A stretch of DNA of 64,000 nt from Macrostomum lignano (lineage: Eukaryota), in the NCBI GenBank assembly GCA_002269645.1, contig NIVC01001124.1:256850-320849 (forward strand). The letters are read 5' to 3'. Below the pieces are notes generated by a model that was not told the DNA's origin, did not search any database, and saw nothing but the letters and a program-made list of their open reading frames with translations. Numbering within the stretch: position 1 is the stretch's first letter; every line of letters starts with the position of its first letter. This document shows, in pieces, positions 15,001 through 33,000 of this stretch. The position numbers and the translations under genes are program-made.

Positions 15001-18000
15001 CCTTTTAGGGCAAGTTTATTCGCATCAACTTTGATACCACTGGCTTCATCGCTGGCGCCAATATCGAGACTTGTATCCTTTTCTATATGATAACTTTTAA
15101 TAAAATTATTGTGGCCAGCTATAAGAGCGTAAGTTTTGTTCTATTATTATTATTATTCCCAATCGCAGCCGGCCACTTTGCCTCTCTCACACTGCCAGTC
15201 TGTGTCCCGAATGCACTTATTTTTCAAATGGGCCAAATGCTGCAAGAGAGAGAAAGACGGAATGAGCGAGCGCTGGTTCGGCCGCAGGATGGCGAAATTT
15301 CATGGAAGAGCCCCCCCCCCCCCCCCGGTCGAGTGGATGAAGCACCGCGAAGCCGAAACGGGCCTGTAGATAGGGGGATGAGGATCTGCGCGACCGAGTG
15401 CCAATGAAAGAATTTTGCCTTTAGCCTTTTTATTTGTGCGTGCGGAGTGTGCTGTGTGTGTGTGTGTGTGTGTGTGTGTGTGTGTTTGTGCATTAGGCAT
15501 TTCTTGGGACAAGCGTGTATAAACTGACCCGTGCTATTAGGACCAAAAATGTGTTGGGCCAGGCCCAATAAGTGCGTCCCGACACTTCCAAAAATGAATT
15601 CTATTGAAATGAAAAAATATTCATTGGAACCGTCTTTCGATTCTCCTTTCAAAAATCAATGTCATTTTTTCATATTTTTAATCAAACACGGGGAATCTAA
15701 TGATTTGCAGTGTCCTAAGAAGTTTAAAAAATTATGCGAACTGATGGTCTGATCCAACAGAACAATTGGGTCTCAAATCGGAATTCTCGTTTTATTACAA
15801 TATTTCTTACAATATCAAGAAAGTCTACTACAAGTAACAGATAGAGGTTCTCCACAGGGCTGCCAATCGACACTTGAAAGGATCCTGACATTTGGCATCG
15901 TGTTTACTATAAAATATGAAATAATTTAATAAAGATTTAGAATATTACAATCAAGCATACAAACCTTATAGATTTAGTATATTTAGATTTTTGCATAGAA
16001 ACAGCTAGCATCTAAATTCATTAGCTTCCAATTTCACTTATACACGAAACATGGCAAATTAAGGTTACATCCGCCTGTGCCCTCGGCCATTTTAACTGAA
16101 ATTCTCGTTTTCAGTCAGCTGCATTAATCTATTTGTCATATGTGAATGGGTATTAACTGACTCAAGTTAGTGACTGGAGGCCATTAACGTAAAGTGACAC
16201 TTTGAGTGAGGTAGTTTTCCGGTGGAAATTCTCACAGTCTTATGAAGCGCTTTTAGAGCAAAGAAATAAAGGGCAAAGAAAAACTTTGCATTTCCCGAGA
16301 AAACCAAGGACGAGTATTAAAGGGAAACGTTTAATCTCTAAGGCTTTAAATGACTTCCTTATTGGCCTGGGTTTGGGCAGCCATACTATGTAGCAAAATT
16401 TTTCCTAGAATTATGATAATTATCGTCTGGTGTACTGAAAAGTACGGAGATACCAAGAAACTTAAGATGACTGCATGGACTGCTAGCACATGTTTGAGTG
16501 TCACTGTCACTGTAAAGTCTAAATCGATGACTAGTTGGCCCAAAACTAACTACTAGGCCTTCCTGAAAAACAATTCTGCTTATCTTGGATCGTAAAGATA
16601 AACCCACGTACAGAGCAGAAGTGTTAAGACAAGCGTGTACAAGACCCAGGCAATCCCTTACCCAGGCCACGTGTACATTCCTATCGCGGCGGGGGGAAGC
16701 GGGGAGGAGAGGCGGGCGCAAGGGAGTCAGGATAAAGTTTACACTGAAGTTGAGGCCTACAAGAGGAAGAGCCAATTCTAATGGAAAGGTACATGTAGAA
16801 GTTCCCTTTGACAAACGGCGTACTGCATATGTTCAAACGAATATAATTCATTTACGAGACCTGCACTACACAGACAAAATGTGCCACGTCACAAGAGTTT
16901 CCATGCATGACCTGGCATGAAAAGACTTGGCTAGGAACCATTACACATATGTAAGTAGAATTTAAAATTCTTTTTAAAATTTTATGATTAAATAAAAACT
17001 TAACCGGAATTTACATATGTACTTTTCTAAAATTCCAGATACGTTGATATCGATAAGCTACCGTTTTCTTCTATAACAAACAGATTGGCCTTCATTGTCA
17101 AGTAAGTCTTGTCTCGTACTCGTATATGTCGTATTTTTTGTAGGTTGAAAAAAATAATAAGCAGCCTAGTAATACTCTGAGCTCAGTGAAATATAAGAGA
17201 GGCGGGACGATCACCTTATTTATCAATTAATTTACAACAGCCAGTTGAGCAATCATAAGTAGGCAAAATTTACACTTCTAGGAAGAACAAATTTTACTAA
17301 AAGTTTCAATCAAAACATTTGGGAAAGAAATCTCGCACGACACATCGCCCACAGTACTAGAGACTTGGAGAAATACTATGTGAGTTTTCTGGGCAACTAA
17401 TGTAATATATTACTGTTATAATTCGATAGTCGAATTATTTTTTTACCCAAAGCAGTGCTATTGCATAACTAAAGAACAGTATAAAAATGACAGCATTCTA
17501 GAACGAGAAACAAAGCTTACTGCAAAGGCAAACGCCGAAAGAAAAGCAGGGCAGAGTCAGCAGCAAAAAAGAAGCTCATCTGAATGGAAAGATGGGCGGT
17601 CAGCAAAGAGATAGGATCTCAAAAAATTGCAACTCCTAGTAACTGAAACTCAATTGCAATAAGTGTTTTGTTCTCTAGGGCATTATTAAAACAAGCAAGC
17701 CTGCCTGCAGTCAGCTAGTGAGAAAGTAAGTTGTTGCGGCACTATCGGGAAAGTGAAAATTGTACTCCATCTGACTCACACAAGCAGCAGCGTTGGGACA
17801 AACCTCGAGTATTTTAATTGTACAGTAAAATTTCATTGACAATGAAGCATTTATTAGAACAGCGACATTTAAATCTGTTTTCAAACAAATCAGACCGATT
17901 TCTCATGAGTTATTTTTCTTTTGTGCGCCCACGCACAGGTTCATCCGCATTCAAACTCGCCGCTGCATCCGTCATTTGGTTCACTTGCTGCTCACAAGCC

Positions 18001-30000: not shown

Positions 30001-33000
30001 CCTATCATGATGATTATCCGAGTGATTTCTGTCATGACGATTATTCGAGTGATGCCTATCATGATGATTATCCGAGTGATGCGCGTCATGATTATTATCC
30101 GAGTGATGCCTATCATGATGATTATCCGAGTGATGCCTATCATGATGATTATCCGAGTGATGCGCGTCATGATTATTATCCGAGTGATGCCTATCATGAT
30201 GATTATCCGAGTGATGCCTATCGTGATGATTATCCGAGTGATGCCTATCATGATGATTATCCGAGTAATGCCCGTCATGATTATTATCCGAGTGATGCCT
30301 ATGATGATGATTTTCCGAGTGATGCCCGTCATGATGATTATTCGATTGATGCCTCTCATGATTATATGAGTAATGCCCGTCATGATGATTATCCTAGCGG
30401 TATCCGGAATGCATATGATAATGACTATCAGTTATACACTTGATAATTATGATATTCTTTTAATTCAAATCAATCGGTCTATATTCCTTACATCGCCATG
30501 GTAACAAACTAACGCAACTACGTAGACCTGCTAGAAAAGGCGCGAGTTATTCAACAAGCAAAGGACGAGCGCTGCTTTCACATATTCTATCAGCTTTTGT
30601 CAAGCCGCGATGAGGACCTGCGCAGTCAGCTATTGCTTGAGCAGCCGTCAGCTTATAAGTATTTGAGCAACGGTCAGCTGCCCGTCCCTGGAGTTGACGA
30701 TAATGCCGCGTTTGAAGAGACTCTGCAGGCCATGGACATCATGGGCATCGCTCAGGAGGAGCGAGTTTGTAAGTTGGCCGACACTGCAGCTGCTTTGAGA
30801 GGGGTTTCTTCGGTAGGTTTATCGTTTGTCTTCAGTAGGTTTATCGTTTGTCTTCAGTAGGTTTATCTTTTGTCTTCGGTAGGTTTATCGTTTGTCTTCA
30901 GTAGGTTTATCTTTTGTCTTCGGTAGGTTTATCGTTTGTCTTCAGTAGGTTTATCGTTTGTCTTCAGTAGGTTTATTGTCTGTCTACAGTATGTTCATCA
31001 ACGATTTAGGTCGATTTATCATATAATTCAGTAGGTTTATCATGGACTTCGGTAGGTTAATAATAGACTTCGGTAGGTTTATCATGGACTTCGGTAGGTT
31101 AATAATAGACTTCGGTAGGTTTATCATGGACTTCGGTAGGTTTATCATGGACTTCGGTAGGTTTAATTTGGACTTCGGTAGATTCATCATAGACTTCGGT
31201 AGATTCATCATAGACTTCGGTAGATTCATCATAGAATTCGGTAGATTCATCATAGACTTCGGTAGATTCATCATAGACTTCGGTAGGTTTATCATAGACT
31301 TCGGTAGGTTTATAATAGACTTCGGTAGGTTTATCATGGACTTCGGTAGGTTTATCATACACTTCGGTAGGTTTATCATTGACTTCGGTAGGTTTAATCC
31401 TACACTCGTATGCAGACTTCGATAGCAATTTCTTATCTGTAATGACTAAGCGCTATCTCGTAAGCTTGAACATTCCAAGATTGAGTGATAGGATTTACAT
31501 GTACAGACTGGGCACCCTTAGAGTTCAGATATATTGATTTATGCCGCTATGCATTTTTATGTCTTCCATCTTGCACCGAGTTCTAGGGAAGGTTTCAAAT
31601 CTCAGTAATCTGCGAGGAATTCTTTTGATTTCCATTCGGATTTGCTTCAAAATAAAAATTTTAATGCGCATGACTCATTCTTTTAGAGCACTGAGCATCT
31701 ATACCGTTCATATATAAGTATCGAATGATAAATATTAAAACTAGCCCAATATTCTCAACAGTTATACTTTCTGTCTTCTATTTACACTACTTATCTCAGT
31801 AGGCTAGTGCGAAATCAATCGGTAAAATCTGCTAGGTCATGCGCACAATTGCAGCCATATTTCGCGTCATCAGCGCCGTCCTACAGTTGGGCTCGATGGT
31901 GTTCAAGCAGGACAGGAATGCCGACCAGGCCAGCATGCCTGACAGCTCGGGTGAGATGAGGCGCTTTATATTTTTGCATCCCAACTGTCAGTGACCGACT
32001 TTTAAGCGCTGGATTTTAGTGCCACTATACCGCTGCAAGCGAAATTTTGTCCTGAGAATCTTTTGTCACTAAAAAGGGGAAGGGGCAGTTGACCCTCTTG
32101 ACCTTCCCTGGATTGCTCCCCCATTGTAGTTGGTGACCCTAGCGACTCTTTGACGTGAGTTGCAGAATCGTGGAAGAGTCGCGAAAAATTTGTCCAAGAG
32201 TCGACTCAAGTAGTCTAAATAGAGTTATGCGACTGCGAAATTCGATTCAAATTCATTAAGTGACGCAGATGCGCTTTAGAAGCAAAACTCAGTGATTCTG
32301 CAGCGACTCCAGCACGCCTCAGATACGACTCAGAGGCAAACAATAAAACGCCTCAAATTGACTCCTAAGCGACTATTTGATGACTTTTTGGCGATTTGAA
32401 CCGTGACATTTCGTAGTTTTAGAGTCTTCTAGAGTCACTGCTTTCCTATTTTACCTGAGTTACCTGCAAGTGACTCTAGGGTGCTTGTATCGGTCACTTA
32501 CAGTGAATGCATCAAACTACATAAAAATTCATCTCGAGCCTCTCTTCCAACCCAACACGCCCCGGCCAGTGGCCCAGAAGGCCTGCCACCTGCTCGGCCT
32601 GCAGGTCAACGATCTCGTGCGCGCCTTCCTCAGGCCGCGCATTCGCGTAGGCCGCGAATTTGTTAACAAATCGCAGAGCCAAGAACAGGCAGTGTTCGCC
32701 GTGGAAGCCATCTCCAAGGCCATCTACGAGAGGCTGTTCCGCTGGCTAGTGACCAGAATCAATCGGTCATTGGACCGCAGCAAAGCTCGTCAAAGTGCTC
32801 ACTTTATTGGCATCCTGGACATTGCCGGCTTTGAAATATTCGAGCTGAATAGTTTCGAACAGCTGTGCATCAACTACACCAACGAGAAGCTGCAGCAGCT
32901 GTTTAACCACACGATGTTCATCCTGGAACAGGAGGAGTACCAGAAAGAGGGCATCGAATGGAAATTCATCGACTTTGGTTTGGACTTGCAGCCAACAATC

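Follow-up and report, generated by a model that had tools for sequence, protein, structure and literature searches.

A 15,453-nt intron with minor-class splice signals in a non-muscle myosin II heavy chain gene of the flatworm Macrostomum lignano

The analysed stretch of the Macrostomum lignano genome (assembly GCA_002269645.1, contig NIVC01001124.1, positions 256,850 to 320,849 of the forward strand; 64,000 nucleotides (nt) in full, referred to below as the window) includes, on the plus strand, a gene for a non-muscle myosin II heavy chain, at 8740–46881. The exons were mapped by tblastn with myosin II homologues and by the continuity of the open reading frame, beginning at the start ATG and extending as far as the 19th coding exon, whose end lies at 46881 at the least; the last exon or exons of the tailpiece lie outside the mapped part, which comprises 18 introns. 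The top named protein matches are Myosin-10 or non-muscle myosin II, with about 64% identity, and the best myosin matches overall are about 64–72% identical. The fifth intron of the gene (intron 5), located at 15073–30525 on the same strand, is a phase 1 GT–AG intron of 15,453 nt. Its donor, its branch motif and the orthologous introns of other animals indicate the U12 type; sequence and positional orthology lend strong support to reading it as a minor-class intron that has been retained.

Intron 5 lies between coding exons 5 and 6, both on the plus strand. Coding exon 5 (15009–15072) ends with the first base of a Tyr codon and coding exon 6 (30526–30768) opens with the final two bases of that codon; the joined exons read GANIET and then Y, a conserved and nearly invariant sequence of the myosin II motor. 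The Tyr codon of IETY/LLEK is thus split T/AC, which corresponds to phase 1. Since protein homology shows this motif to be nearly invariant in myosin II, both splice junctions of intron 5 are fixed. The other 17 mapped introns are 65–2,424 nt long, and the statement of the first-pass annotation, made from the sequence alone, that intron 5 is by far the longest intron of the gene is correct. The same annotation assigned it one third of the locus; the share amounts rather to about 40% of the coding span of about 38 kb. Intron sizes are very uneven within the gene: intron 11 (38041–38105, plus strand) has only 65 nt, and its neighbours are 0.3–2.4 kb long.

The 5′ splice site of intron 5, GTATCCTTT (15073–15081, plus strand), matches the U12-type consensus RTATCCTTT at 9 of 9 positions. 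Its context is actt/GTATCCTTTTC, with the first intron G at 15073, so that the U12-type donor noted in the first reading does stand exactly at the exon boundary. Donors of the U2 type (GTAAGT, GTGAGT, GTTTGT, GTGCG, GTGTGT) are found in 17 of the 18 mapped introns, with intron 5 as the sole exception. Compared with the U2 consensus MAG/GTRAGT, GTATCCTTT agrees at four of nine positions, and a leave-one-out U2 donor score gives −0.77 bits for intron 5 against 3.95–13.13 bits for the 17 other donors. A single copy of GTATCCTTT is present in the 64 kb, where 0.41 copies are expected, and at least one copy was found in 32 of 100 shuffled sequences. The occurrence of the motif is therefore not significant by itself; what is significant is its position on an exon boundary required by homology, at the codon where the orthologous introns begin with GTATCC.

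The 3′ end of intron 5 contains a U12-type branch-site motif, TTCCTTAC (30484–30491, plus strand), which includes TCCTTAC at 30485–30491 and has a candidate branch A at 30490, 35 nt from the last intron base. The 3′ splice site is TAG at 30523–30525 (plus strand), the first AG after an AG-free zone of 92 nt; the acceptor reads ...CAACTACGTAG/ACCTGC and the final intron base is 30525. There is no AG between TTCCTTAC and this TAG, so a first-AG rule would still choose it. The probability of finding TCCTTAY or TCCTTRAY by chance within the last 55 nt is about 0.006–0.009, as estimated from observed and shuffled densities. A second, U2-like branch motif, ACTAAC, lies at 30508–30513 on the plus strand, with its A at 30512, 13 nt before the acceptor; it is an alternative candidate and possibly a competing branch site. 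The ACTAAC coordinates and the 35-nt distance agree with those given in the first-pass annotation, as does the absence of a clear polypyrimidine tract: the pyrimidine fraction at positions −25 to −4 of intron 5 is 0.41, the joint lowest of the 18 introns.

The same exon pair was located in the genomic loci of homologues, and five of these carry an intron at the same codon and in the same phase. In fish MYH10, the intron has 209 nt, the donor acct/GTATCCTGTG and the branch motif TTCCTGAC, with a spacing of 14 nt to the acceptor. In a bird MYH10-like gene, the intron has 1,635 nt, the donor acat/GTATCCTACC and the branch motif TCCTTGAC, also with a spacing of 14 nt. The intron of bird MYH11 is 2,119 nt long, with the donor actt/GTATCCTTTTC, the branch motif TTTTTTAAC and a spacing of about 15 nt. 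The fish MYH9 locus holds the acceptor end only, with the branch motif TTCCTTAAC and a spacing of 17 nt. Finally, the non-muscle myosin II gene of the flatworm Schistosoma margrebowiei has an intron of 643 nt with the donor acat/GTATCCCTTT and the branch motif TTCCTTAT, 11 nt from its TAG. GTATCC starts the intron in all four loci that include the donor end (fish MYH10, bird MYH10-like, bird MYH11 and Schistosoma). The site is intronless in the rotifer Rotaria, in the butterfly Pararge and in three further loci (L009–L011), which fits lineage-specific loss. The Ixodes locus begins downstream of the intron site and is hence uninformative.

The vertebrate MYH9, MYH10 and MYH11 introns and intron 5 share the IETY/LLEK codon, the T/AC phase and the donor core GTATCC, as well as a TCCTTRAY-like branch motif, a YAG acceptor and the lack of a strong pyrimidine tract; the donor of bird MYH11 is identical to that of intron 5 over actt/GTATCCTTTTC. 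A vertebrate minor intron near this position, which the first-pass annotation had put forward as in need of verification, is thus borne out by GTATCC donors and TCCTTRAC-like branch motifs in fish and bird MYH10 and bird MYH11, and further by the matching acceptor end in fish MYH9 and the same intron in Schistosoma. Mouse Myh9 is also reported to contain a U12-dependent intron, of unspecified position, whose retention increases when assembly of small nuclear ribonucleoproteins (snRNPs) is impaired (PMC5224493). The vertebrate introns differ from intron 5, which has a spacing of 35 nt and a length of 15,453 nt with 55% tandem repeats, in their spacing of 14–17 nt and their length of 209–2,119 nt. 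The Schistosoma intron comes from another flatworm and resembles intron 5 in its codon and phase, in its donor GTATCCCTTT and in very similar flanking exons; its branch motif TTCCTTAT and TTCCTTAC have in common the form with a single A. Compared with it, intron 5 is 24 times longer and has 24 nt more between branch and acceptor. In bird MYH11, the degenerate branch motif TTTTTTAAC stands beside the perfect donor GTATCCTTTTC; because of this combination, the orthologous intron family is taken to tolerate weak branch sites.

Intron 5 is likely the flatworm orthologue of an ancient bilaterian U12-type GT–AG intron that is actually excised by the minor spliceosome. The U11/U12 di-snRNP would recognise the donor GTATCCTTT together with the branch motif TTCCTTAC, and the next AG downstream, TAG at 30523–30525, would be taken as the acceptor despite its distance of 35 nt from the branch A. 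Judged from the sequence, TTCCTTAC is moderately favoured as the branch-point site. The U12-type class proposed in the first reading agrees with both the signals of intron 5 itself and the orthologous U12-type introns. The proposal that minor splicing is retained also gains from these data, since the 9-nt U12-type donor is unchanged at an ancestral U12 position and the minor spliceosome therefore presumably survives in this lineage. Lineages without a minor spliceosome have either deleted introns of this kind or converted their donors (PMC3584512). Minor introns and most of the minor small nuclear RNAs (snRNAs) have been reported for Schistosoma flatworms (PMC10639083); no further paper on minor splicing in Macrostomum or Platyhelminthes was found.

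The following points weigh against this explanation. The spacing of 35 nt, which the first-pass annotation gave without remarking that it exceeds the usual U12 range, compares with 11–17 nt in the five orthologues examined; U12 introns typically place the branch close to the acceptor, 11–13 nt being optimal (PMC3584512), and intron 5 departs from this typical, though not strictly defining, property. TTCCTTAC carries a single A where TCCTTRAY has two. RNA structure that could shorten the 35-nt spacing was sought and none was found (z-scores −0.05 and 0.20). No minor snRNA genes were found by an Rfam scan, which covered the 64-kb window alone and yielded only a 5S-like match. The long spacing is the one atypical feature of an intron of otherwise minor-class sequence, and TTCCTTAC falls inside the region from −55 to −5 in which intronIC searches for branch sites (PMC7367187). 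The only in-frame acceptor nearer to TTCCTTAC, an AC with the intron end at 30513, was rejected by sequence reasoning: with it, the invariant IETYLLEK would contain CNYVD in place of Tyr, and a disfavoured GT–AC pairing would also be required.

The ACTAAC motif allows two other readings of the 3′ end. Intron 5 might be a hybrid in transition from U12 to U2 type, which has kept the U12-type donor but relies, in full or in part, on the major spliceosome for its removal, with branching at ACTAAC, TTCCTTAC being a relic displaced by insertion. The near-perfect U2 branch sequence at 30508–30513 and the position of the U12-like motif beyond the usual spacing (PMC3584512) are consistent with this, conversion from U12 to U2 type and ‘hybrid’ or ‘minor-like’ introns are on record (PMC3584512, PMC11347168), and the major spliceosome is able to use some U12-consensus donors (PMC10853781). 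Such a transition is nevertheless unlikely for intron 5: its donor could pair with U1 at four of nine positions only and, scored as a U2 donor, falls about 4.7 bits or more below all others of the gene, the pyrimidine tract is absent, and in the U2-type introns of the gene CTAAY motifs lie about 38–45 nt before the acceptor, not 13 nt. Moreover, conversion usually proceeds via mutation of the donor, which is perfectly intact here. It is equally improbable that the intron is U12-dependent but branches at an A near −13 in ACTAAC, with TTCCTTAC non-functional. A distance of 13 nt would fit the optimum of 11–13 nt (PMC3584512), and the degenerate motif TTTTTTAAC is tolerated in the bird MYH11 orthologue. 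Yet AAACTAAC and TCCTTAAC have only TAAC in common, and about three base pairs with the conserved branch-binding sequence of U12 snRNA would be formed, as estimated from the known pairing between U12 and the branch site; the full TTCCTTAC, in turn, is unlikely to occur by chance in the last 55 nt (p below 0.01) and shares its single-A form with the Schistosoma orthologue.

The ‘minor-like’ and ‘hybrid’ introns of the Minor Intron Database resemble intron 5 in combining a perfect minor donor with a nonstandard 3′ end (PMC11347168). The pipeline of this database scans positions −40 to −1 for a branch 12-mer (PMC11347168) and would, by this reckoning, miss TTCCTTAC; it might then call intron 5 minor-like or hybrid. 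Unlike hybrid introns, intron 5 has a good U12-type branch motif inside the intronIC region, and for this reason it is probably a genuine minor intron whose spacing is unusual, and not a hybrid. As for the spacing itself, it is conceivable, though less likely than not, either that the branch 35 nt away is used, through relaxed spacing or first-AG scanning, or that the intron is midway in conversion from U12 to U2 type with ACTAAC as the branch. If the distal branch is used, its distance is roughly threefold the mammalian optimum, and Macrostomum would then have either looser spacing constraints or first-AG scanning.

Five tandem arrays constitute about 55% of intron 5. The largest is a satellite of 5.9 kb at 17947–23845, in which a unit of about 645 nt is present in 9.1 copies, 97–99% identical to one another; it is found only here in the window. 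It is followed by a 38-nt tandem repeat with 3.7 copies (24066–24206), a (TCTA)n microsatellite with about 106 copies (25101–25522), a 40-nt minisatellite with 22.5 copies (26551–27458) and a 27-nt minisatellite with 41.6 copies (29274–30394), which ends 131 nt ahead of the acceptor. No nested gene or RNA was recognised in intron 5: eight open reading frames inside it have no Pfam domain, and no credible Rfam family is present, the Rfam matches inside the intron being sub-threshold, low-complexity hits in the GCN run of the satellite. Most of the remaining myosin introns, and the downstream intergenic DNA, likewise contain large arrays, including (TGTC)168 at 11421–12079, (AGTT)181 at 14124–14846, 68 copies of a 23-nt unit at 34072–35609, 24 copies of a 29-nt unit at 37072–37774, (GTCT)498 at 40405–42393, (AGT)310 at 43686–44599, 127 copies of a 31-nt unit at 47754–51526 and 34 copies of a 44-nt unit at 52081–53589. 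Long open reading frames in the arrays are repeat artefacts, for example one of 1,025 amino acids on the minus strand at 48492–51569. Since arrays are this common across the gene and its surroundings, the expansion of repeats seems to be characteristic of this genome, and the length of intron 5 is attributed to recent tandem-repeat expansion unrelated to its class.

The repeat content bears on two further explanations. Intron 5 could owe its length to the assembly, through mis-expanded arrays or a joined foreign block, the true intron being much shorter. The tandem share of 55%, with nine near-identical copies of about 645 nt, would suit such an artefact, and a 1-nt frameshift in an A-run of the adjoining HSP70 gene could signal consensus errors. 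This is very improbable: both ends of the intron and every exon are preserved and align in order with the homologues, similar arrays occupy most other introns and the intergenic DNA, and about 7 kb of intron 5 would remain without the arrays. The first-pass annotation had also suggested a U2 intron nested within the U12-type one, a twintron, and many strong U2 sites. In its wider form, this explanation involves nested or recursive splicing with regulated alternative products. A consensus U2-like donor, GTAAGT, lies 56 nt inside intron 5 at 15129–15134 (plus strand; agc/GTAAGTTTT), every satellite unit contains GTGAGT as well as a YAG preceded by a pyrimidine tract, and there are precedents in the Drosophila twintrons of prospero and dUrp, U12-type introns that likewise contain U2-type signals (PMC3584512). 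Of the 15 GTRAGT sites in intron 5, against 8.9 expected, nine are one site repeated across the satellite copies; about seven independent sites thus stand against 8.9 expected, U2-like sites are not enriched, and the claim of many strong U2 sites proved weak. The reading frame is open up to the donor at 15129, but splicing from it to the acceptor of intron 5 would put the downstream exons out of frame. The intron was found to contain no coding open reading frame, Pfam domain or Rfam family, the exon junction requires no extra protein residues, and the orthologous introns are simple and short (209–2,119 nt). Unlike prospero and dUrp, intron 5 has no recognisable nested U2 intron that is in frame or conserved, and a twintron is very unlikely here. 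The donor at 15129 may plausibly act as a cryptic site if minor splicing fails. A rate-limiting role, which the first reading considered for intron 5, is a general proposal for U12 introns (PMC3584512) and finds no support in the present sequence.

Intron 5, read as a retained minor-class intron, would add a free-living flatworm to the animals with this already known and deeply conserved minor intron in their myosin II genes, and would provide indirect evidence for a working minor spliceosome in Macrostomum, of which M. lignano is a laboratory model. It may serve as a natural test case for the maximum distance between a U12-type branch site and the acceptor, and for the tolerance of minor introns to a satellite-filled body of 15 kb. 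In other respects, this is an expected retention of an orthologous intron, and its chief value lies in the correct annotation of the gene.

Upstream of the myosin gene, at 5533–7445 on the plus strand, the window contains an intronless gene of a cytosolic HSP70 with the C-terminal EEVD. The encoded protein is 92–96% identical to three HSP70s of Macrostomum lignano, the next best match being 85% identical and the rest about 75%; this places the window in Macrostomum or a close relative. The reading frame of the gene is shifted by 1 nt within an A-run at about 6113–6120, where GGTGAAAGAACATT is found in place of the expected QGE-K/R-NILIF; it is either a pseudogene or affected by a consensus error of the assembly. 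A 5S ribosomal RNA match of 44.8 bits, above the Rfam gathering score and covering the full model length, is located at 4963–5060 on the plus strand, about 470 nt upstream of the HSP70 start, and could represent a 5S gene, a pseudogene or a 5S-derived repeat. The 3′ end of a coiled-coil gene lies further upstream, at 3–428 on the plus strand; it resembles a Rab11-FIP3-like domain weakly, at a score below threshold. A Penelope-like retroelement, composed of a reverse transcriptase followed by a GIY-YIG endonuclease, occupies 60043–62296 on the plus strand, and RNase H-containing fragments of another retroelement are found beside it, at 56770–57673 and 62412–63413. The nearest database relatives are 41–59% identical, with 59% or less for the best match of the Penelope-like reverse transcriptase.

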